Shown here in pieces: positions 2,096-27,110 of a DNA stretch of 64,000 nucleotides. The stretch is taken from positions 1,240,001 through 1,304,000 of the forward strand of contig NEEC01000016.1 in the NCBI GenBank assembly GCA_002189035.1, written 5' to 3'. A model generated the notes under the pieces. That model ran no database searches. It saw nothing but the letters and a program-made list of their open reading frames with translations, and was not told the DNA's origin. Every line of letters begins with the position of its first letter. Within the stretch, counting starts at the first letter, position 1. This stretch comes from Utricularia gibba (taxonomy: Eukaryota; Plantae; Magnoliophyta). The position numbers and the translations under genes are program-made.

Positions 2096-3060
2096 TCACC
2101 CAGAAAGAGCAGTTGCAGACGATGGGTTTCGGGGCTGCAGAGCTTCCCGCATTCTCGTCACCACTTCCTTAACGGTCAGATTGAACCCCTTCTCCATCTG
2201 CAGGAACGGTGGATGCAATTCGCGAGTCCGATCAGTGTTAATGGACTTTAAACTGAGAGAAAATGTATAGAAATCTACCTCTGTGACGATGGTGACATGG
2301 TGGGCGAGGCGGCCGATGGAGGCGACGTATGTGTTGACGACGGAGAGATTGAGCTTCTCCACGTTGTAGATTATGTTGGCGAGGATGCCTTTCCGGTACT
2401 CACACTGGATCAGAATGAGGATCTGGGAGTTGCACAGTCGGGCCTCGATCTCCGGCAGAGGCTCCGCCACGCCGCCGACGTTGTCCTCCGCCGTCGATTT
2501 CCTGATCAGGACAACCGATTCGATTGACTTTTTCGACGTCTGCTCCTCCAGAAGCTGGACTCTTTCCTGGAGAAACTTCAGGTACTTGATCGCGTCACCT
2601 AGGACCGAAGTCTTGTCCGTCTTCTTCAATCCGGGACGATAGCGGAGAGAGCGAGGAACCGTTGGCTGAGCTGCTCACGGCGTTTCCTCTCAGCGATGAT
2701 GTGATCGTACGTCTGCGAAGGGGGGCGAATGCGGCTGGATCTTCGCACGGGTTGCGGAGCCTTGGGCTCCTCGTTCGGACTGTCGGACCCCCCGGGGCTC
2801 AGAGTCGTGGAATTTGCAGACGGTGGTTTTTCTGGTCCAAAATTGAGGATGATAGGAGTTGAAGCTACCCGAGGAGGAGCTGTGACAGAGGAGTGGTTGT
2901 TCGTTTTCTGAAGCTTCGCCGGCGGCGGCGTGAATTCGTTCATCCGCGATAAACATGGGATCTCGAAGTTTTCCCCGAGAACTGCCGCCAATTCTTCGTC
3001 CATCTCTTCCAGGAGATCAAACTGATCGGAGAACATGGGATTGTCCAGTCCCTGGAACAT
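2096..3060 (-). CDS. Subgroup IVa bHLH transcription factor (bHLH18/19/20/25-like) with ACT-like C-terminus; 1-bp frameshift at ~2631-2635
   Basis: DHIIAERKRREQLSQRFLALSAIVP then, in another frame, LKKTDKTSVLGDAIKYLKFLQERV; one added base restores VPGLKKTDK. 81-nt GT-AG intron 2278-2198; last exon MEKGFNLTVKEVV...SG*. Start uncertain (ATG at 3060 or an unlocated upstream exon). Confidence 0.85.
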
Positions 3061-3263
3061 CTCCTCCTGTTCCCAAACAAAATGCAACACACCAGACACC
3101 GATTAAATTTCTTTTCTTAAAAAAAGAACCAATAAAAAAATATTTCACCAACGTGCTTATTAAAGCAGTTAGTTTTCTATGTAGAATTAACCAACGGTAA
3201 AAGTAACGACTCTGTTGCACTCCGGGGAAAAGCAACAAAAATGATGACACAGTTGTCAGTGGG

Positions 3264-7800: not shown

Positions 7801-7963
7801 ATACATGTATTCTAGCTTCTATATTTCCCAACTCAAAGATTGCAGCTTTTCCGAAGACGTTTGAGACATCGTGAGAAAGTTTCATTTTTGTTCCTCATTT
7901 GTATTGTAGGTGTTAATGATTTCCTTTGACGGGCATCTAAGTTGGTTATTTTGAGATTTGCGG

Positions 7964-9124
7964 ATGGAGTTGGATCCTATCAAAGATGCATTTGACCATG
8001 TAACAAAGAAGCAAAAACTTGCATCCTCAAAATGTCAAGAAATGGTTCAGAAGATTGAAGAGGAGATAGCAGAAGCCCTGTCAAGACTGAACTCCCAGGA
8101 GGATTCTGCATGTTCTTTGGATCATAAGTCGGTCCTCAGCAGTTTGAGCATAGGATTGAAGACTCTGGATTTGGTTAGCCAGCTTGAGGGCGCCCAAAAA
8201 GAGCTGAATGCTGCGGCCACCAAGTATGCGAAACTTCTTGAGAAATGCTTCAATCCTGAAATCTCAAGAGCATGCCGTGATGTGGATTTTGATAGCCACA
8301 CAGTGAACCAAATCATCGCAAGCCACTTCTATCGAGAGGGCCAATTTGACCTCGGTGATTGCTTTCTTTGTGAGGCCAGTGAACCTGAGGCATTGTCTGG
8401 GAAGTTACCCTTTTTGGAGCTTTTTCAAATTATGGAAGCCATTAGATCTCGGGATTTGGAGCCTGCAATCACCTGGGCCGTAAAGCATCGTGAACAGTTG
8501 ATGGAGAACGATTCACAGATTGAGTTGAAGCTTCATCGCTTACAATTTGTGGAAATGTTGCAGAACAAGGGCAGAGATGAGGCCCTCAAGTATGCCAGAT
8601 CAGTGTTTGCTCCATTTTCTGAAAAACACATGTCTGAAATCCAAAAGCTTATGGCTTGTCTGTTATGGGCTGGGAAGCTTGATTCTTCTCCCTACGCTGA
8701 ACTGCTGTCCCCTGCGCACTGGGATAAGCTTGCCGAGGAAGTGAAGAGGCAGTTCTGCAATCTCATGGGACAATCATACGATTCTCCACTGAGTGTAACA
8801 GTTGCCGTCGGTGTTCAGGCGTTGCCAACTCTTCTGAAGCTGATGAATGTGATGTCGGGAAGGAAACAGGAATGGCAGACCATGAAACAGTTGCCTGTCC
8901 CCGTGGATTTGGGAACCGAGTTCCAGTTCCATTCCATATTCGTCTGCCCCGTGAGCCGCGATCAAGCAACCGAGGAAAACCCACCCATGTTGCTGCCCTG
9001 TGGGCATGCTCTGTGCAAGCAATCCATCACCAAGTTGTCCAAAAACAACAGCACTCGACCCTTCAAGTGCCCCTACTGCCCTTCCGAGGTCGAGGCAGGT
9101 CAGTGCAAGCAGCTGTTTTTCTGA
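7964..9124 (+). CDS. RMD5: RMD5/GID2 homolog, CTLH-complex RING E3 ligase (386 aa, intronless CDS)
   Basis: MELDPIKDAFDHVTKKQK start; LisH/CTLH/CRA-type region (IASHFYREGQFDLG, LELKLHRLQF equivalent); FQFHSIFVCPVSRDQATEENPPMLLPCGHALCKQSI...FKCPYCP degenerate RING. Confidence 0.95.
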   Translation: MELDPIKDAFDHVTKKQKLASSKCQEMVQKIEEEIAEALSRLNSQEDSACSLDHKSVLSSLSIGLKTLDLVSQLEGAQKELNAAATKYAKLLEKCFNPEISRACRDVDFDSHTVNQIIASHFYREGQFDLGDCFLCEASEPEALSGKLPFLELFQIMEAIRSRDLEPAITWAVKHREQLMENDSQIELKLHRLQFVEMLQNKGRDEALKYARSVFAPFSEKHMSEIQKLMACLLWAGKLDSSPYAELLSPAHWDKLAEEVKRQFCNLMGQSYDSPLSVTVAVGVQALPTLLKLMNVMSGRKQEWQTMKQLPVPVDLGTEFQFHSIFVCPVSRDQATEENPPMLLPCGHALCKQSITKLSKNNSTRPFKCPYCPSEVEAGQCKQLFF

Positions 9125-9681: not shown

Positions 9682-11117
9682 CTACGTCCGGTTTTTAGCC
9701 TTCTCCATTGACCCCGGGGCTGTGACAAAAGGAAAGCACAGGGATAAGTAGATTTTCCAGATTTAAAGTGGCCAACGGTTACAGTCAGTGTATAAGAGAT
9801 TCATGGGGTAGAAAGCATGAATCTTTCTATAAGAAATCACAAAATCTAAGACGTGGAACTTACCTAATCCAATAGCATCAGAGCCCTTCATAATTTTCAG
9901 TCGCTTGCATGAAGCAATGAACATCCTGTAAAGTTGAAATTTGTTATGCTATACATTGCTTATCTGATTCTTGAAGCAGCAAATGAGAATAAAATTTAAT
10001 GACTTACTCCCAAGGGACATCACCAACTAGCATCCAGTCACCATCTTTATCCTCATAAGTCAGCACATATTCGGATCCATGCAAATCCCTTGACTTACTT
10101 TCAGTCAACATTTCTCTGTTTGGAGCTTCTGGAGATACATATTGTCCTAAAAAGAGAGAGTCATCATGTTTATTCCTTCAGAAAACAAGTGAGGCACGAA
10201 GGATTACCTGTAATATAGCAGCTGAACATCTTCTCCAGAGCAGATGAAAGGTCTTGATATGCCGAATACATCCTCAAATCCACCTTCCGAAGGTATGGAG
10301 CACCATCCATGCTGACCTTAACAAAGAGAGAACCAGCACCTGGCTTACCATCAACCTTGTCATTATTTTTCGACGTTGTTCCAAGGGTATTTTTCCAAAA
10401 TGACCGAATAGGTGGCCAGCCAACCATCTGTGCCCTGTGGATGAAAGCATAAAATTCCAATGGTGCACTACTGATGCAAGTTATTTTATTGCAAATGTTC
10501 ACAACTTACTTGGCTGCAGGGGCAGCGTTGGTGCTAGAATAATTTATCTTGTCATTACCATCCTGAGATGCATCAAGATCCGTCTCAACAGTCGCAGGAG
10601 TTGCACACGAACCATTTGACATCAAATTTCCAGTTAACTTTGCATGTCCCGCATCAGAGGCTCCCACACCGAAAATCCACTTCCCATCAGAAAAAATAGC
10701 ATTTCTGGGCTCAGCCAGTCCGTCCACTGTGTCAGAAAATCCTCGTTTGTTCCCAGAAACGATTTGTTTTTGGGATGAATAGCAGATTACATCTTTTGAG
10801 GGAGCCAAGGGAAACAACGGCTTCTCATCATGTTTCACCAAGCTGAAGAGGTTAAAATCAGATTCGTGTTCTGGGGATTGGGATCCAGGAAGACTCAGTC
10901 TCAACTCAGTCGCCTTAAGATTAAGACAGCTCTTGTTTTCCTCAGGCGATGCAGAGACAGACGAACTGTCCACTGAGGAACAATCAGACAATCCTAGGTA
11001 GTTCCTTTCTCTCAGTCCAGATTCCTTGGGAGAATCAGAATCTGGCGATGCAGGGGAGCCCATTAAAAAAGCATTGCACTGACCTTGGCCCCCCACCCCT
11101 AAAAGTGGCGGAGACAT
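9682..11117 (-). CDS. Aux/IAA repressor, IAA8/IAA9-like; 5 coding exons
   Basis: Exons 11117-10510, 10434-10208, 10146-10008, 9925-9864, 9719-9682, all GT-AG and in phase. [10 protein letters not shown] start, [16 protein letters not shown], domain I ELRLSL, degron [42 protein letters not shown]. Confidence 0.95.
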
Positions 11118-12144
11118 CAAGTTAAGGAATCCAAGATGCAAGCCTGTAAAAACAAGACCACCCAACAACCAAACATTTCAATTGTATACTGAAGAAGCAT
11201 TTTGAACTCATAAAGAAACGGCATTGTGTAGTAACAGAAATTCGCGTTAGGCAGCATGGTGATTCCACAGAAGGAATCCTAGTCATAATAACTTGAAGTC
11301 ATAGGTGCTCAAAACACGTTTAGCAACCAAAATAGATGGAAACAAAGCCCTCCATAGCAAGAATAAAACAGGGAAAGATGAAGATGAAATCAAAAATTGT
11401 ATTTTAAAACTACATACATAGAGAGGAAGAAGTTATTGCTTTTGAATGAGGGTATTCCTAGAAGCAAGCAAAGAGATCAACCTGTTAACTACACCCAAAT
11501 ACAGGCAGCATGGAACCAAGCAAGAAAGCACATTCGAACGTTAGCAAAAACTAACTAAAGAACCCATTAAATAACGAATACGCACCAATGGGCAGTCCAC
11601 AGCTACAACGAACTAGAAAAAAACTGGATGACTGATTTTGGACAACTACCCACAAGATCTGAGCTTTTTGAAAAGACAAAGAGCCTCTTCAATAAATTTC
11701 TTCCTCCAAAATACAATTGTAAGGAGAAACCATCGACAAAGAGCTCACCTGAAACCCAGTCTTCAAAGCTCCACAGCAACCCACAACCCTCAAATGGAAA
11801 TGAAGAATCTCGAGGCAAGATTAACAAACCAAAAGCACACTACACAGAATAAACTTCTGTTTAAGGTCCTTCCATCAGAAACAGTTCAAGAGAAATGAAG
11901 TGCCCGTGCGTAAATGTGTGAGAGAAGAAAAAGGCAGCAGCTCTTTCTCTCTGTATATATCTTCGGCCCAGAACAGAAAGATCAGGATGAGCAGCGCAAG
12001 CGTAAAAATTAAAACTTTGGAAAAAGCGAGTAGGGGTATTGGTGGAACTTTTCTAGAGGTCGGAGGCGAACGGCGGCGATTGATTCTTCATGGATTCTCA
12101 GCCGTTGAATCATGCGAGGGAGGGAGCAGTGCAAAATAATTACC

Positions 12145-13704: not shown

Positions 13705-14720
13705 GCCCCCAGCTTGTGCAATCCAATTTCGAGAGTACCTAAACTCCTGCCCAGCGGATAAATTAGAATTTGGTCATATATAAACATTGTGTGAAAAAAA
13801 ATAATGATCATATATGTATCTTTTTATATTAATGTGAGAGATAATGTGACATTGTTCACTTTTCTAAATGACTTCATGCCTAGCACTCGAGTGAAGGAAA
13901 CTCTAGAGTAATATCACCAAGCTACGGATGGTCTCTTGGAGGAGGCACGATAATTTATCTTTTATTATAAAGGTTTGTTGTATTACTTTAAATTATTAAT
14001 ATATTAGATTTTATATACATACGTTTTGTTTGGTTAAAATTAAAAATATATTTGAGTTATAAATATATGTTTTAAAATGATATGTTTGATTAATATGTTT
14101 TAAAGAATTTTTGAAAATATTATTAGAGGGGTTACTATGCTATGTTTTTTGAGTAATTTTCTTTTTTAAAAAATATTAACCTCTAAATTCTTTTAAACGT
14201 AAAAAAAATTTATTTTGTTCGTTGTTGAATATTACTAATCTTATTTAAATAAAAATGAATGATTTAAAAAATATAATTATGTTTGTAAACAGTGTTTAAT
14301 TTAAAAAAAAAATTATTTATATCATATTGTAAAGAAAGTTTTATAATTATTTTATATAAAATATTAATAAAATAATCAAAACATATCCAATTAACATAAC
14401 ATACATCTTTATTATTGAATAAGACCATTGAGAAATAACTACAACCACTCTATGTTATGAAGATGATATCAATAATAATAATAACTATATATATATTTCA
14501 TGTGTAGGGTTTTGGGAAGTGAAGTAGCAACTGTGGATGCGTATCTCATATGTAAAAAAAGGAAATATCTGCTAACAATTCCAACACACATACACAATAC
14601 AACAGGTGACCACTTTTGCGAACATTCGATGATCAATTTACAGCACAACAGTATGTATACCAGGGAAGGGGGAAAGGTTGCAGAGAGTAGATCGGCATCC
14701 TTGACAGCACAGAGGCGCAC

Positions 14721-15009
14721 TCAGCTCTCCATATAGTTAGCACATGTCACGCAGGAAGCGATAACGGACATACAGGTAGCGAAAACCTTCCACATGCCAC
14801 ACAGTAGCTTGCTGCAAGAATGCAACCAGATTACAAGCAACTCAACAGAGAGTAGAAGAAAAAGGATGAAGGAATGCATGAGCTGGTTACCAGCATCCCT
14901 TCTTCTCTGAGCTGCTCCCCGAACCGGCATCAAGAGCAAACGTGAGTAGGAAAACCCATCCATGGTGATGGTGGATTGGCTGATCCAGAAACGTACCTTG
15001 CGTAGTCAT
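14721..15009 (-). CDS. Cys-rich transmembrane-module (CYSTM/PCC1-like) microprotein, copy A, 45 aa; intron-1 acceptor reads CG instead of AG
   Basis: Exons 15009-14997 (ATGACTACGCAAG|GT), 14924-14891, 14811-14721; intron 2 is 79 nt GTAACC...TTCTTGCAG. Product MTTQGSGSSSEKKGCCKLLCGMWKVFATCMSVIASCVTCANYMES. Model derived from copy B. Confidence 0.65.
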
Positions 15010-15035
15010 GGCTTGCTGCTGCTCTCTGGGGTGGG

Positions 15036-15063
15036 TTGACTCCCCTTCCTGCTTCTATATAAA
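15036..15063 (-). promoter_or_regulatory. Core promoter of peptide gene A (TATA box plus W-box-like TTGACT)
   Basis: Minus-strand CCCCCTTTATATAG about 50 nt upstream of the ATG and TTGACT at 15036-15041; both conserved in copy B. Confidence 0.55.
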
Positions 15064-15944
15064 GGGGGAAGACCTGGAGGAAAGACTGGAGAGAGAAGGG
15101 ATGGGATCATCATTATGTGGCCGACATTGCTTGACGGTGGGGACTGGCGGCTTTGAGACCAAGTCTAACATTGCGGCTTCAAACTACCAGCATTAATTGG
15201 TAATGCATCAACGGAACCACATCTGCATGATTGGAGGCTAAAAATTACGTGCAAATGGTTAAAGATTCCAATTTTTATTGAGATTTAAAATATTGGTGTT
15301 AATTAGAACAAATCCCATACCCATCTTCCTACTTATTGAGGGTGATTTTGAAAAATAAACCCTATAAAATGATTGTGTTAGAAAACTACCCAATTTATGT
15401 GTAATTTTTTGTGCTTAGTATATGTGAGAAAAATGAAGGATATATAGTTTTATAAACAACCTTACTTATAGGCCTATGTGCGATACAAATTAATTTAATG
15501 TAGGATGTATTCATTTTGTTTATATAAAAAAATCGTTAATCGTTTGATATTAATTAGGTTAAATTCGAAGCATTTTAAAATAAAAAAATGAATTATAACT
15601 CAATCAAAATTCAATTATGATTATATCATAATTTGTTACAAAAGTATTTCATTTCAAAAGATGGGGTTCAATATAAAGCAATGATGTGGAGCAATCAGCA
15701 ATGTGGCCAGGAATCGCTTCACAAGTCAAGCCTGGTGGTTTTAAATCAGTCAAATAAGCCGGCTTTAAATAAGTGCACTACAAATATGGTATCATATGTG
15801 TGTAAAAAACTTATCATTTTTATATTAATTTTTGGATTTTGATTACTATTTTTTATTGTTTTTGTATTTTTATAATTATTAGTGCTGTGTCAGCTAGCAG
15901 GCCTGATAAGCGATCTACATTAACAGACATAACTTGGTCATCGG

Positions 15945-16264
15945 CAGTGTTTTAAAATCGTAGGTTCGACCCGGTTAGATCCAAACCCATGTTTTAGTGG
16001 GTTGGATCCAACTCTATTCTTTACTTTTATTTTTTTTATTTTTTATTATTTATTTTATGATAATGGTTATGAATAAATATAAAATATATTATACATATTT
16101 GATATATATTTTAAATAAATCTTAATAATTATATTTTTATATATGTATTTATATTGATAGTAGAAAATAATTATTTGTATTTAAATTACACATTATTTTA
16201 ATGAGATATGAGATGATAAATATGATTTTGATTAAACTTTTTAATATAATTGTATCAATTATTG

Positions 16265-16296
<32 letters not shown>

Positions 16297-16460
16297 TTTC
16301 AATATTTTGATGTACTAAATTATGATTTTATAATTATATTCTAATATTTTGATAAATATAATTCAAAATTAATGAATTTGATTCAACCCATTTTAAAAAT
16401 AGTTGAACCCAAAATCATAGTTAGACGATTGAATGGGTTCAACCCGTTTTTAAAACACTA
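15945..16460. mobile_element. hAT-type MITE (516 bp)
   Basis: Terminal inverted repeats CAGTGTTTTAAAA / TTTTAAAACACTA; 8-bp target duplication gtcatcgg / gtcatagg (7 of 8 match); absent at the matching site of duplication unit B. Confidence 0.85.
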
Positions 16461-17823
16461 GTCATAGGATATGGGTTAGTAGTTCCTAATAGAACTTGAG
16501 GACAGACGCATCACCGGGTAAAACCAGCCTATCTCTTGGAATCATCTGCATACTCATGTGTTGGAAATAAGTATGTGATAATCGGACGAGCATACATAAT
16601 GTCTAAGTGAAAATGTAAATCATATTAAAAAATATTAAATTCAATCGATTATTAATTATATGTAATTTATTATATATTTAACTACTTAATTTTAATTTTA
16701 CAACATGGGATTTTTTATTCCAATATCTGTCATCAATTTGAATTGATCTTTGATTTGATTATACTATAAGTCAATCTGATTTTTTTACCTAAGTCTAATA
16801 TATCTTTTTTTATAGCAGAATTTAAATTAGTACGAAATCTATCTTTGCCACCTAAGCCATCCCGTGAAACAAATGTTTTCATAACATGTTGAAAATAAAG
16901 ATCCGATAAATTAAACAAACACACATGAAATAACTAATAAAAAAAATTAAATACAATCGATCACTAATATAAGCTTCACTCATAAACTCAACTCACATGT
17001 TCATATCTTAGAACCTAACCCACTTTTATATTTTGTGAAGTGAGGTTGGTTATTTAATAAAAAGATGGGCATCAAACTTTTGGTTTGGTATCAACTCACC
17101 TATTTTATTATGTAACCAAATTTCGACACATTAAATACAAGGATGTTGATAGATAGAAATCAATTATATTATATGATTGCTTATCTTAAAAATGAGTCAC
17201 ATTTGATGATTTGGAATAAAAATAAATGTAGGAAAATATTTTTTTGTTCATTCCACATTAATCTCACTTGATCTCTCATCAATATTTCAACAAATTTCGC
17301 AACTACATTGTTGGAATCCTCTACTTACATGTCATGCAGCACCCGCTTCTACCAAAATTTGTTCCTTTGTGAAACCACAGTTATTGTGGTTGGGCATGGA
17401 CTTTGGCTCGCTTTGCATATATTCCCCTCTCCTATCGAGCCCTCATGTAGTTTGCTCCCGCACCTCATATTTGACCATATTAGCCTACCTAATCCATACG
17501 TTTTCGACTCTATGGCAACACAGAGCCAGATCGCGGGTGCTTCTCATACCAAATTGTAATGATCTATTCCAGTCTTATCCAAAAGTACAACATTTTTCAA
17601 CATCCTGATGTTCAATAACATCACTTCAATTTTGGCCTATTCATTTTTTTATAAGAGGAGAAGTACTCTTGAAGTCACTCTGCCCACCCCTCGAGTGCTC
17701 TGTGTTTCTTCGTAAAAATTGCAGTGTAGTTCAACATTATAATGTGTGGTATCATTATTTGGATTCTTGCATGTTTGCCATTTATAAGAAGGAATGTGCT
17801 TTCGACTGCATGGACTACTTTTA

Positions 17824-18275
17824 GGTAGTATTTGATTGATAGAATTAATTAGATTTAAAAATTAAATTATAAATTATATCGTATTTATTTTGTAACTTTT
17901 AATGAGCTCGACAAAACGAGGTCTTTTTTTAAATTCCACATATATTGATTTATTTAAATTATCTCTTGTCTTTACTTTACTTCATATTAGTTATAATCCT
18001 ATTAGGTAGCATTTGTTTGATAGAATTAATTAGATTTATTATAAATTATATTATATTTACTTAGTGCCTTTAAATAAGCTAGAGAATAGGAGAATTTTTT
18101 TAATTCCGTGTATACAGATTTCTTTAAAATCATGTCTCTTTCTTAGTTTATTTAATATTAATTTTAATTCTAATAACTAAACATTATCTAAAAAGATTAT
18201 TCTTCTACATCACTTTTATTTAAATTCAAGTTAATTAAATCCCTTTTATGTTAATTCCATAAATCAAATATTTCC
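17824..18275. mobile_element. PIF/Harbinger Tourist-like MITE with a duplicated left end
   Basis: Left end TTA|ggtagtatttgattgatagaat repeated at 18005; right end attccataaatcaaatatttcc|TTA is an imperfect inverted copy; TTA flanks. Confidence 0.55.
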
Positions 18276-18604
18276 TTACGGTGAAATGTGTCCCATTGAG
18301 ATGCTTCTAATACCGTCTTTAGAACAAGAAAATTTTGAATGACTTTCTCATTGATAACTATAGGTTATATACAGAGATTATAAAAAAATACCGAAAATTA
18401 AGCTTATAATATAGCCCATAAATACAATATTCTCCTAAAATATAGAACGTAAATATTAACAGGATCAATCTTGGTTAACTTTTAATTCAATCCCGTACCA
18501 TATTTTATAACATGATCCACATCCTTTGTGCAATCCAATTTCGAGAGATGGAGTTTTGTCACCAAACTCCTGCCCAGCCCTCGGGGGAAATAAACTCCGT
18601 CGTT

Positions 18605-18812
18605 ACGCCAAGATTGACCGGCCGGTTAACCGGTAACGGATTTCCGGTTTTTCAAAACAGATGGTGGCCCACTTGTGTAAAGTTGATCAGCTTTAAATAT
18701 TGGATTTCCAAAATCCGGTTTTGACCGGTCAAATCCGAATTTCACCGATCATAACCGGATTTTGAACCGGTCCCTTACCGGTTCGGTTTGAAAACCCGAT
18801 TTGAAAACATAG
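18605..18812. mobile_element. Truncated MITE rich in ACCGG subterminal motifs
   Basis: Many (A)ACCGG/CCGGTT motifs; ends ttgaaaacatagg (hAT-like terminus); present only in duplication unit B. Confidence 0.45.
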
Positions 18813-19614
18813 GGATTACGATAACCAACGATACGGATAGGAGGCACGAGCATTTCTATTTTATTGTAAAGGTTTTTATATCATATTTTAATTGGCAATA
18901 TATTTGTTTTTATATACATACTTTTCGTTTGATTAAAAGTAAAAATATATTTGATTTACAAATTTTATAAATATATGTTTTAAAATGATATGTTTGAAAG
19001 AATTTTTGAAAAAAATGATTAGAGGGGTTATTATACTATGTTTTTTGACATATTTTCTTTTTTTTGAAAAACATTAATCTCTAAATTCTTTTAAACCAAA
19101 TCAAATTTAATTTTTTTTGTGTTAAATAATACTAATCTTATTTAGATAAAAATGAATGATTTGAAAAATATAATTATATTTATAATGAGTGTTTTTTTTT
19201 TAAAAATAATTATCTAGATCATATTGTTCAGAAAGTTTTATAATTATTTTTATATTAAATATAAATAAAATACTCAAACACATATAAAATAACCTACATC
19301 TTTATTATTTAATAAGACCATTGAGAAATAACTACAAGCACTCTATATTATAAAGATGATAATACTACCAATAATAATAATAAATTTAGTAACAAAAAAT
19401 AGGTATATTTTATGAATTTGAGTTTCATGTGTAGGGTTTTTGGAAGTGAACTAGCAACTGTGGATGCGTATCTCAATATCTGCTAATAATTCCAACACAC
19501 AAATCACAAATTTAGCAGTGACCGGTTTTGCGAACATTCGATGATCAATTTACAGCACAAGAGTATACCAACAAGGGAGGGGGACAGGTTGCAGAGGCGC
19601 ACTCAGTTCGCCAT

Positions 19615-19891
19615 TTAGTTACCACGTGTCACACAGGCAGTGATCAAGGACGCGCAGGAATCCAAAATCTCCAGCATGCTACCCAGTAGATCGCTGCAAG
19701 AATGCAACCAGGTTACAAGCAACTCAACACAGAGTAGAAGAAGAAGGATGAAGGAATGCATGAGCTGGTTACCAGCATCTCTTCTTCTCTGGGCTGCTCC
19801 CCGAACCTGCGTCAAGAGAAAACGTGAGTAGGAAATGCATCCATGGTGATGGTGGATTGGCTGATCCCAGAAACGTACCTTGCGTAGTCAT
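19615..19891 (-). CDS. Cys-rich transmembrane-module (CYSTM/PCC1-like) microprotein, copy B, 41 aa
   Basis: Exons 19891-19879, 19806-19773, 19693-19615; introns 72 nt (GTACGT...TTTTCTCTTGACGCAG) and 79 nt, both canonical and pyrimidine-rich. Product MTTQGSGSSPEKKRCCDLLGSMLEILDSCASLITACVTRGN. TATA box upstream at ~19945. Confidence 0.7.
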
Positions 19892-20058
19892 CGCTTGCTG
19901 GTGCTCTCTGGGTTGGGTTGACTCCCCGATGCCGCCTCTTGCTTCTATATAAAGGGGGAAGACCTGGAGGCGAGATTGAGAGAGAAGGGATGGGATGGGA
20001 TAATCATCATGTCACAGTTGATGGTGGCGGCGTTGAAACCAGGTCTAACATAGCGGCT

Positions 20059-20180
20059 TGCCTGTTTGGTTGGTGGATAACGCCCTCAGGTTTGGGTTTC
20101 GGTTGGGTTTATAGGCAATACCCATATGAAAACCTAGGTATCAAACAAAACCCACCTAATCTCTTCAACCAAACGCGTTC
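20059..20180. mobile_element. Small Tourist-like MITE remnant
   Basis: gcctgtttggttg ... caaccaaacgcg imperfect inverted ends; homology to unit A breaks exactly here. Confidence 0.35.
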
Positions 20181-23934: not shown

Positions 23935-25144
23935 TTAGAGATTTCTCCCTCCACAGCCTGCATTCATGAAGAGGGCTTGCTTTAAGTCTTCACAGCTAAC
24001 CAAAGGGCCACTCCCAGCAACCTGAGAATGTAAGATTTGTTACTAATGACGTGAATGGTTTTGTTGATGGCAGAAGAGGAACTGCGTGCATACTTCAATA
24101 CAAGAAGCTCGGAAAGCGAAGTCATTGAAGCAGCTGATGACACACTGTTCAACATCAAGGCCTAGAGAATCAAGTGTGCTGAGTGTTGACAACAAAAGGC
24201 CCGGTTTGGGAGCGCAGCAAACTTCGATATGCATCTCATCGTTTTGCCGGTTTACTTCGAACTGAGAGCTGTCAAAGATTAATGCCTGTTCTCATCATAG
24301 ATCTGCTTGAAAAATTATGAGGTTTGTACCTTGGGTGGGCTTCTTGCTAGCAGCTCATTCATAGATTGGTCCCTTGAGGTGTTGCTTGTCTGATTCATCT
24401 GTTTGTTGGTATCATCAATGCCTTCTTCTCTTAGCTTGTTGATCTTGTCATATAGCTCCTTTAAGTAATCAATTGTGTCTCCAAGTATAGATGTCCTATC
24501 CATCTGTTCAACCATAAGCATACAAAGCAACAAAGGTAGCATGTTACCACGAAGAAAACATGTTAAGTGGTGTAAATGATTGTGTATTTTGCCTTGCTGA
24601 TCTTGGGGACGATGGACCGGAGCATGGAAAGCCTGTCGTTGAGCCGTTTCCGGCGTCGCCTTTCCGCCATCAAGTTCTTGGATGGCAGCCCATCAGGCTT
24701 CTTACTTTTCCAGCTCCTTTCTCCGTACGGACCAATATCAGCTGCTGCGATCCCAACTTTAAACATGTTCACACTGTCTTCAAATTGGCTCTTGGAATTT
24801 TCATCGAACACCGTGTGCCCATTCCCCATCCCTGCTTGGTACTCCTCCTGCGCCACTTGCAATGGCTGAAAATTAACACCTTCACAAAAAGCGCCATCAA
24901 GAAAGGGCTGAAACTCCCCGAGTAAACAAGAAAAAGTAGACTCTTGCGGGGCAATCAGTTCCATGAACGAAGATGTGTAGGTTTCCGACGGAAAAAGTAC
25001 TTCCTGGGGCTGATCTAAACATGTAAAGCTCTGTGGGACTTGAATCTCATTGCAGAAAGATGAATGCAGAATCCTCGGATCCATCATCATCATCATCCTT
25101 TCACGAAGAGCGCTGTGCATAAATTGCTGCTGCTGCTGCTCCAT
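23935..25144 (-). CDS. bHLH93: bHLH93/bHLH61-like (subgroup IIIb) transcription factor; 4 exons, first intron GC-AG
   Basis: Exons 25144-24593, 24503-24330, 24261-24094, 24021-23935. PSKNLMAERRRRKRLNDRLSMLRSIVPKISK|MDRTSILGDTIDY; ACT-like IEVCCAPKPGLLLSTLSTLDSLGLDVEQCVISCFNDF; ends KQALFMNAGCGGRNL*. The ORF-track start at 25183 is a GTG. Confidence 0.92.
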
Positions 25145-27110
25145 TCCGTGTTCCTTCTTTTCCCCGGTTGCTTCGAAACCCACCTAAAGGACGTGGGGCG
25201 TTACTTCTTCTTCTTCTTCCCCCAGAGGAATCTTTCCTCACTCTATCATGTTCTGAACTTAGATATAGCTTTTTCTTCGTCATGTTCTGAACCGCCAGCG
25301 AACCGGGTCTACCTGTATTTTTTATTTTTTATTTCTAAATCCACGTGGATATTTCCATAAAAAATAAAAATCCCTTCCATTTATTAAGGGTGATTTGTGT
25401 TGTAAAAATTGATATTTAATTACATTTATATGGATTTTAAAGTGTGAAAATAGTAAGAAAATAGAATGGTGCCAAGGGAGGAGGAGATGTAGAAGCAACA
25501 GTCATCGTGAAGCGTATCTGCCCCCACGATACACACCGCCAAGGCATGCGTCGGCTTCTGGGGGCTTTTTGGCAATTTTCAATTTTCGTAGATTCCTTCT
25601 GCCCGGTCCCACTGTCCCACACCCACGCTTGATAATGGAATTGTTTTGTTTTCTATTTTTAAATAACATTTACACTTTATTAAAAATATTTTAAAGTTAT
25701 TTTCTATACATTTGTGTTGTCAAATTATGGTTTAAGTTGTTAAAAACGGGTGGTATTTACCAACGGACTTGGAGCTACCGTTTGTATAAATAATTTAAAT
25801 TTCAAAATTCGAAATTATGTCATATGTTACTCAAACTTGTTTTTTATAAATAATTTATCTTCAAATTTATAAAAATATATATTTAAATCTTTATGTTATC
25901 AAAACTAATTGATTTTGACTCTAATCTTGTTACAATGGTGAATCATGCAAGATATAAAGATAAAAACGATATAACCATCATCAATTTGAATTATACAAGA
26001 CACAAATGTAATATAACTCTGATAAACGTATCATTCTATTTGTCAATTTTCATACGCGAATTTCAAGAATGCTAATATGAAATTTTGTTGTGTTTGAAAC
26101 TACCGTCAGTTCACAATATCATTAACCGATTTACTTTTAAAAAATTTTGAAAAATTGTTTGGCTATTCGTTGACGATTGTGATAACTTGATTAATTTTTT
26201 TTACAATCTAAAACTTAAAGTTTAAACTCTTTATACTTGTCAAAACTTAAAGTGTTTTTCTTGAATTTTTATATATATTAAAAACTGATGTTTTAAATCA
26301 TGAAAAAAATCATAAATTGGTTGTGTAAATGATTCTTAGTTTAAACAGTTTCACTACACTTAAAATCATGATTAATGTTTTTTGTTTTTTAAAAAATGAA
26401 AAAATATTAAATAATTATTAAATCATAATTGAATCATGATTGAATTATCATTTATTTATTTTTTATTTTAAAACGATTCAAATTTAATTGAATTAATTGT
26501 GGTCTTATTTAAATGGGCCGGCATCAATAGGTGCAACCGATTGGGCCTGATGACCAGATGGGAGCACAATAAGCCCGGGATTGCTTCTATTGAACCGTGT
26601 GTGTGGTTCTAGGTTTTTGCTGACGTAAAGTGGACAACAAAGAAGTTGCTGTAATATTCATGACTTGTCGTATGGGGGAAAAAAGCTATTTTTAAAAAAT
26701 AAATAATGAAGGTATTTTCCAACACCCAACGGCCTTTCCATCTTTTATAGTTTCCGTGTGGACCCTGCGAAGCCCATACCCGTACAATGCACCCACATGC
26801 ACCTCAGCCTGCAATTCACTCCACCAACTCTTGGATATTCAGAAAACTTCCCCAAGGGAGATCCTTTGTGGAAAATAGTACAAAAAGAGGGGTCGATTTT
26901 GTAGTTATTGCATATTATAGGGAAAGCGTGAAATTTGGAAAATAAAAAAGAAATTGAGTTTCTTGAGGGGTTTCATGATAATTTGAAAAGTGTAGGGGAG
27001 ATATTGGGTATTTTTAAATAATATTAATATCCGATGGGAAAAGAACCATACCAGCCAGCCAAGTCAGAACGTTGCTGAGTTGCTCTCGAATCTTCGTACA
27101 CGCCGCTACG

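Follow-up and report, generated by a model that had tools for sequence, protein, structure and literature searches.

Gene conversion tracts are typically tens to hundreds of base pairs (bp) in length. A layout in which a hyper-conserved leader precedes a diversifying mature domain occurs in conotoxins, snake venom PLA2, and the plant SCR/SP11 and DEFL peptides, as it also does in scorpion toxins. In the latter, with an intron as the neutral reference, the leader was found to be more conserved than the intron while the Cys scaffold was kept (PMC2651877). Proteins of the CYSTM family (PF12734), on the other hand, are recognized by a C-terminal transmembrane (TM) helix, 5-6 Cys, and a patch of 3-4 consecutive Cys; an acidic residue follows the TM helix, the module occupies the extreme C-terminus, and the head is variable, non-globular, and rich in Pro and Gln (PMC2804304). 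Here, we analyzed a 64,000-nt stretch of Utricularia gibba (contig NEEC01000016.1, positions 1,240,001-1,304,000; hereafter the window, numbered from its first letter), i.e., lamiid plant nuclear DNA that carries a tandem pair of ~1.2-kb units, both on the minus strand and ~4.9 kb apart. Using blastn of the region's two halves and alignment, unit A (~1.24 kb) was placed at 13940..15180 and unit B at 18839..20059, and the two were found to have diverged by ~16% since duplication (Jukes-Cantor distance, 0.175). Each copy has a predicted TATA box, three exons, and an open reading frame (ORF) of 41-45 codons. A sequence-only reading of this locus had claimed that the last exon diverges far faster than the adjacent intron as a result of strong diversifying selection, with gene conversion of the 5' part as the main alternative. 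Our analysis points, with moderate confidence, to a different emphasis: a 5' tract that was probably homogenized by ectopic gene conversion, lying beside a GC-rich last exon that appears to be unconstrained and to evolve at a near-neutral rate.

The divergence counts reported from the sequence alone were reproduced exactly. Exon 3 (14721..14811 in copy A and, for the coding part, 19615..19693 in copy B; minus strand) differs at 24 of 91 aligned positions with no indel, as compared to 3 of 79 in intron 2, 2 of 34 in exon 2, and 0 of 13 in exon 1. The 91 nt of copy A include the stop codon (TGA) and specify 29 codons of a hydrophobic segment with four Cys, while copy B has 25 codons with two Cys followed by an earlier stop (TAT to TAA; 19617-19615). 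As had been described, Cys falls from six in copy A to four in copy B, and the charge-altering replacements K to D, K to E, and A to D were all found. Copy B ends four codons earlier than copy A and has gained three acidic residues, and the net charge of exon 3 is +1 in A and -2 in B. Two codons of exon 3 carry a synonymous change only, in agreement with the earlier count, and path-averaging gave 3 synonymous and 21 nonsynonymous changes. In exon 2, the two differences are both nonsynonymous. No other interior 91-nt window of the duplicated unit is as divergent as exon 3, and the contrast of exon 3 with the tract that runs from the core promoter to intron 2 is not due to chance (Fisher P = 7e-7).

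As a neutral yardstick we used the 3' untranslated region and flank of the unit (13940..14720 in copy A, minus strand), a comparison that the sequence-only reading had itself proposed. This segment differs at 112 of 717 ungapped columns (15.6%) with 10 indel events, and its divergence is uniform across three sub-blocks (14.6, 16.2, and 16.2%). It also shows a 30-nt indel, present in copy A only (~14680-14709), which lies 11-12 nt past the stop codon, immediately after a stretch conserved between the copies, and whose length is a multiple of three; further indels of 16 nt and 34 nt occur in the 3' flank. At 15.6%, the flank is more divergent than the 5' part (5.8%) and less so than exon 3 (26.4%). 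Within the flank, G/C sites have diverged by 25% and A/T sites by 12.7%, and the GC content of exon 3 is 48-51% vs. 23% in the flank. With composition taken into account, 17.2 differences would be expected in exon 3 and 24 were observed, i.e., 1.4 times the neutral number (binomial P = 0.049). When columns near gaps (up to 3, 5, or 10 nt away) were removed, exon 3 remained at 1.30-1.41 times neutral (P = 0.046-0.095), and at G/C sites the rate of exon 3 equaled that of the flank. On the same composition-matched yardstick, the 5' part carries 15 differences vs. ~49 expected (ratio 0.31; P ~1e-8), so that the 5' part, and not exon 3, is the large anomaly. The contrast between the exon and the 5' part therefore stems mainly from an unusually conserved 5' part rather than from a fast exon 3. 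Indeed, exon 3 seems fast because it adjoins an apparently homogenized tract and because it is GC-rich in a setting where G/C sites mutate ~2 times as fast as A/T sites. The intermediate rate of the 3' flank and the GC-richness of exon 3 had been overlooked in the sequence-only reading, as had the CCG acceptor of copy A described below.

The position of the rate change was determined with change-point models in which each segment has a rate that scales the neutral number expected from its composition. The best single break fell between 14811 and 14810, no more than one base from the intron 2/exon 3 junction (delta log-likelihood ~13), with observed/expected ratios of 0.31 upstream and 1.01 downstream. 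In a three-segment fit, the low-divergence tract spanned 14811..15117 in copy A (18 differences vs. 56 expected) and 19693..19997 in copy B, both on the minus strand, with support intervals in copy A of 14835-14798 for the 3' boundary and 15119-15079 for the 5' boundary. The ratios were 0.32 in the tract, 1.76 upstream, and 1.01 downstream, and the tract was significantly less divergent than both flanks (P ~1e-8). An optional hot third segment (14810-14655, 1.46 times neutral) was unsupported, since the gain was equaled or exceeded in 41-44% of parametric bootstrap runs under two rates (P ~0.42). Within the tract, differences occur at 5 of 61 promoter positions and 5 of 71 positions of intron 1, in addition to the counts given above for exon 1, exon 2, and intron 2. 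Divergence thus ranges from 3.8 to 8.2% in the promoter, the introns, and exon 2, the reduction is independent of functional class, and the introns differ significantly from the flank (P = 4e-4). Since promoter, introns, and exon 2 are equally low, the pattern fits the prediction of conversion and not that of selection.

That same equality bears on a reading in which purifying selection holds a functional 5' element, e.g., a short RNA or a promoter together with sequence that acts in regulation or splicing, while exon 3 and the flank are unconstrained. Few substitutions accompany a normal or high density of indels (three events) in the 5' part, the very short introns (72 and 79 nt) would consist mostly of splicing signals, and a local purine/pyrimidine hairpin over the exon 2 donor is found in both copies, all as might be expected of such an element. 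However, introns, exons, and promoter are conserved to the same degree, both exon 2 differences alter the peptide, folding z-scores are only -1.2 and -1.4, and the minimum-energy folds differ between the copies. The conserved 5' part had no match in Rfam. We regard this explanation as improbable. In the hairpin itself (14850-14915 in copy A, 19735-19797 in copy B; minus strand), a purine-rich run of exon 2 can pair with a pyrimidine-rich run of intron 2; the hairpin contains one change in the exon and one in the intron, and the overall fold is not significant.

In the history that we favor, tandem duplication would have given two small transcription units, and a stretch of ~300 bp, reaching from the core promoter through intron 2, would later have been homogenized, most likely by ectopic gene conversion. 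The homogenized tract, now ~6% divergent, would stop at the intron 2/exon 3 junction or no more than ~25 nt from it, and the conversion would date to roughly one third of the duplication's age, while exon 3 and the 3' flank would have retained the full divergence since duplication. Since the tract still holds 6% divergence and three indels, any conversion was not recent. Conversion of the 5' part, which the sequence-only reading had ranked second, would explain most of the pattern. According to that reading, diversifying selection would be contradicted by a conversion tract ending at this boundary together with an exon 3 that diverges no more than the neutral flank. A low-divergence tract ending there is what we found, and the second part nearly holds, exon 3 being 1.3-1.4 times as divergent as the flank predicts (P = 0.046-0.095). 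Exon 3 would have evolved under relaxed constraint. Since its peptide appears to lack purifying constraint, one or both copies have probably ceased to encode a functional membrane peptide, assuming that the ORF once did.

Several observations weigh against homogenization followed by neutral drift. First, when the substitution spectrum of the flank was imposed on exon 3 in a Monte Carlo neutral model, 13.1 nonsynonymous changes were expected, and the 21 observed exceed this number (P ~0.012). Second, 12 of the 24 changes are at first codon positions (P ~0.01 given the total). Third, the tract carries three indel events where ~1 would be expected at its apparent age. In addition, pure conversion makes it a coincidence that the tract ends near a splice junction, and the expression and splicing of both copies are predicted features. 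Finally, the comparison involves two sequences only, and a third copy, which would provide the phylogenetic incongruence that usually proves conversion, was absent from the 64-kb window in DNA-level and peptide-level searches. The last result also bears on the idea that exon 3 of one copy was replaced by a short conversion patch from an older third paralogue located elsewhere in the genome. Such a patch could account for the localized excess of divergence and for the places in exon 3 where 2-3 neighboring positions have all changed. However, it should have raised synonymous differences, which stand at 3 vs. 3.9 expected, and adjacent-difference pairs are not above the level of the flank (3 among 24 vs. 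36 among 112). With no third copy in the window at either the DNA or the peptide level, we judge a patch of this kind highly improbable.

The nonsynonymous excess is one reason to consider that positive diversifying selection could act on exon 3 as a module for recognition or an arms race, with conversion or constraint holding the 5' part and selection barring conversion from exon 3. In the Monte Carlo model, the nonsynonymous class is elevated while the synonymous class is at expectation, the charge of the segment flips through the replacements noted above, and exon 3 tops the interior windows of the unit. Moreover, the rate switch coincides with an exon boundary, and there is a precedent in toxin families, where the leader is hyper-conserved and the mature peptide diversifies (PMC2651877). 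Other results point away from selection. The total excess is only 1.3-1.4 times neutral and nil at G/C sites, and the change-point model does without a hot segment. The ratio of nonsynonymous to synonymous rates (dN/dS) in the proposed frame is 2.3 (Nei-Gojobori), which is not significant (Fisher P = 0.25), and there is no excess at second codon positions (6 of 30). The Cys framework is not retained either, contrary to true diversifying Cys-rich peptide families, the splice acceptor is lost in copy A, the tail is truncated in copy B, and the locus was picked post hoc out of a very large scan. Therefore, the strong diversifying selection originally proposed for exon 3 is unsupported. The residual nonsynonymous excess, which rests on 30 codons of two sequences at a locus chosen post hoc, is a hint that falls short of establishing selection, and we consider diversification of exon 3 a possible but unlikely explanation. 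In its most specific form, which we find doubtful, the pair would encode lineage-specific, tail-anchored, possibly S-acylated microproteins in which, after duplication, positive selection turned one C-terminal helix from a basic, Cys-rich membrane segment into an acidic one, with conversion holding promoter, head, and introns alike and selection blocking it at the boundary of exon 3.

Neutral simulation of exon 3 gave results consistent with drift. Two of its four Cys were kept vs. 2.6 expected (P = 0.45), and a stop arose within the first 25 codons in 44-55% of runs. Since both the loss of Cys and the survival of the ORF match neutral drift, neither indicates constraint. Codon-level tests also bear on whether the exon 3 stretch codes on the opposite strand, in which case half of the changes would be at the third position of the plus-strand frame. 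The antisense frame is open at 14691-14807 in copy A and 19522-19689 in copy B, and runs in both to a common TAG (14805-14807 and 19687-19689). Its dN/dS is 0.23 (P = 0.004), and the 30-nt indel preserves it. The implied dS, however, is 0.93, five times the neutral divergence of the flank. Purifying selection could not give such a value, and antisense coding was rejected for this reason. In addition, the frame has neither an ATG nor a plausible upstream exon, in copy A it is interrupted by a stop within the 30-nt insert, it has no match in Pfam, and it is one of six frames, chosen post hoc. We find this explanation scarcely credible.

The predicted gene models are closely similar in the two copies (all features on the minus strand). 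In copy A, a TATA box (TATATAG, 15055..15061) within a stretch identical between the copies lies 52 nt 5' of the first ATG; in copy B the TATA box (19945..19951) is 60 nt 5' of the ATG. Exon 1 is 13 nt long (14997..15009 in A, 19879..19891 in B), and in copy A it begins at the first ATG downstream of the TATA box and ends at the donor AAG/GTACGT. The 72-nt intron 1 (14925..14996 in A, 19807..19878 in B) is canonical in copy B (GT...CAG, with CAG at 19807-19809), whereas in copy A it ends in CCG (14925-14927) and the canonical AG acceptor is missing. Intron 1 of copy A may be retained, or an alternative AG may be used. In both copies, intron 1 has no in-frame stop, its frame in copy A continuing that of exons 1 and 2, and an in-frame AG is found 18 nt downstream; thus, copy A could still encode a related product. 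Exon 2 (34 nt; 14891..14924 in A, 19773..19806 in B) is Ser/Gly-rich in copy A, where its terminal Cys-Cys codon pair is split by intron 2. The 79-nt intron 2 (14812..14890 in A, 19694..19772 in B) is T-rich and runs from GTAACC to TTGCAG in each copy; in copy A it is 43% T and contains an in-frame ATG at 14879. Downstream, an AATAAA poly(A) signal occurs 307 nt past the stop codon in copy A (14408..14413) and is conserved in copy B, 308 nt past the stop codon (19301-19306).

The ATG within the predicted intron 2 (14879 in A, 19761 in B) opens a further reading, in which the sequence is unspliced and an ORF starting there encodes a signal-peptide-like leader followed by a hypervariable, secreted mature peptide. 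The frame of intron 2 is open throughout in both copies, the 23-residue N-terminus of the product is hydrophobic, and the arrangement of conserved leader and variable mature part resembles that of toxin-like families (PMC2651877). However, three ATGs lie between the TATA box and the start in intron 2, the putative leader differs at three sites, each of them nonsynonymous, and an acidic residue interrupts the hydrophobic core. Canonical T-rich intron signals, moreover, are placed exactly as the three-exon model requires, and relatives of the product were absent in a word search, a HMMER scan, and the Atlas (see below). We therefore regard an unspliced secreted peptide as very unlikely. The contiguous ORF from this ATG spans 14724-14879 in copy A and 19618-19761 in copy B (minus strand), and with intron 2 retained, the frame opened by the first AUG terminates 6 nt before this ATG.

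The peptide predicted by the three-exon model has a head of 16 residues rich in Ser, Gly, and Lys, followed by a hydrophobic C-terminal segment in both copies. The Kyte-Doolittle maximum over 19 residues is borderline, at 1.64 in A and 1.49 in B. A shift from a TM to an amphipathic helix in copy B was unsupported, as hydrophobic moments were 0.41 and 0.40. The Cys pattern of copy A consists of a CC doublet where exons 2 and 3 meet, together with four single Cys, and that of copy B of CC and two single Cys; with two of the four exon 3 Cys lost in B, the framework is not conserved between the paralogues. At the C-terminus, copy A has a penultimate Glu, six residues past the last Cys, while in copy B, whose last residues are Arg-Gly-Asn, the helix is followed by no acidic residue. 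Membership in the CYSTM family was rejected, since the patch of consecutive Cys is missing, the head is Ser/Gly-rich, and Pfam hmmscan of the exon 3 translation of each copy singly gave no match to the CYSTM profile at expectation values (E) up to 10. The ORF from the first AUG begins with the polar head and does not qualify as having a signal peptide; a leader-like ORF arises solely from the internal ATG at 14879, which three other ATGs precede.

Relatives of the peptide were sought with contiguous genomic stretches that included in-frame translation of introns, which limits the sensitivity of the searches. No Pfam family was found in the exon 3 translations of either copy or in the antisense ORF. 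Word searches gave no candidates for a 52-residue stretch (the in-frame part of intron 2 plus exon 3) or for a 40-residue stretch (exon 1, intron 1, and exon 2). An exhaustive HMMER search across 1.84 billion representatives was likewise without a match, the best score in the ESM Atlas (0.76) was at noise level, and scans of metagenome DNA with conserved 24-25-mers gave 0 matches. Within the limits of intron-containing queries, the ORF has no detectable relatives.

The pair lies among unrelated genes. Three bHLH-type genes, all on the minus strand, are at 485-883 and 2096-3099, in tandem at the left end of the window, and at 24315-25183. Between the left-end bHLH pair and the peptide pair are a single-exon RMD5/CTLH-RING gene (7958-9124, plus strand) and an Aux/IAA gene (10170-11168, minus strand). 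Searching a collection of 5.8 billion proteins with the RMD5 homologue (7964-9121, plus strand) gave best relatives that were 74-75% identical, from Genlisea, Perilla, Catharanthus, and Salvia. In RMD5-anchored loci of five lamiids (Perilla, Catharanthus, Genlisea, Andrographis, and Cinchona), RMD5 had other neighbors and no trace of the unit was found; local gene order around RMD5 is not conserved. The lineage, that of a lamiid asterid, is poorly sampled, with neither a close relative nor an annotation of its own among these proteins. Between the two copies lies a short repeat-rich stretch (18590-18790) with repeated ccggtt motifs that resembles a miniature inverted-repeat transposable element, and which gave a sub-threshold Rfam match to mir-3045 (21 bits vs. 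a gathering score of 90; E = 0.77).

Taken together, these results indicate that a contrast in divergence between an exon and an intron of duplicated genes can arise almost wholly from a homogenized neighboring tract and base composition. The proper yardstick for such an exon is a composition-matched flank outside the tract rather than the adjacent intron. If the residual nonsynonymous excess is true, the pair would be a compact plant case in which conversion and diversification are split at an exon boundary in an orphan microprotein, with moderate relevance to work on small ORFs and de novo genes.

Compared with described systems, the predicted peptides resemble CYSTM/PCC1 proteins in being small, with a non-globular head and a hydrophobic C-terminal segment that has several Cys in or near it. 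They are unlike them in that the 16-residue head is Ser/Gly-rich, there is only one CC doublet, and copy B has two segment Cys. With the leader/mature toxin families, the pair shares a conserved 5' part, a variable last coding segment, tandem duplication, and nonsynonymous changes that outnumber synonymous ones; it differs in that, under the three-exon model, it is without a signal peptide and its Cys framework is unpreserved. Unlike in the scorpion toxins, the introns of the pair are as conserved as the leader, and the excess over neutral is marginal. As for ectopic gene conversion between tandem duplicates, the pair here comprises only two sequences, so no donor or direction is assigned. In other respects it is alike: the low-divergence tract is contiguous, is low in all classes of sequence, and at ~300 bp is within the typical length of a conversion tract.

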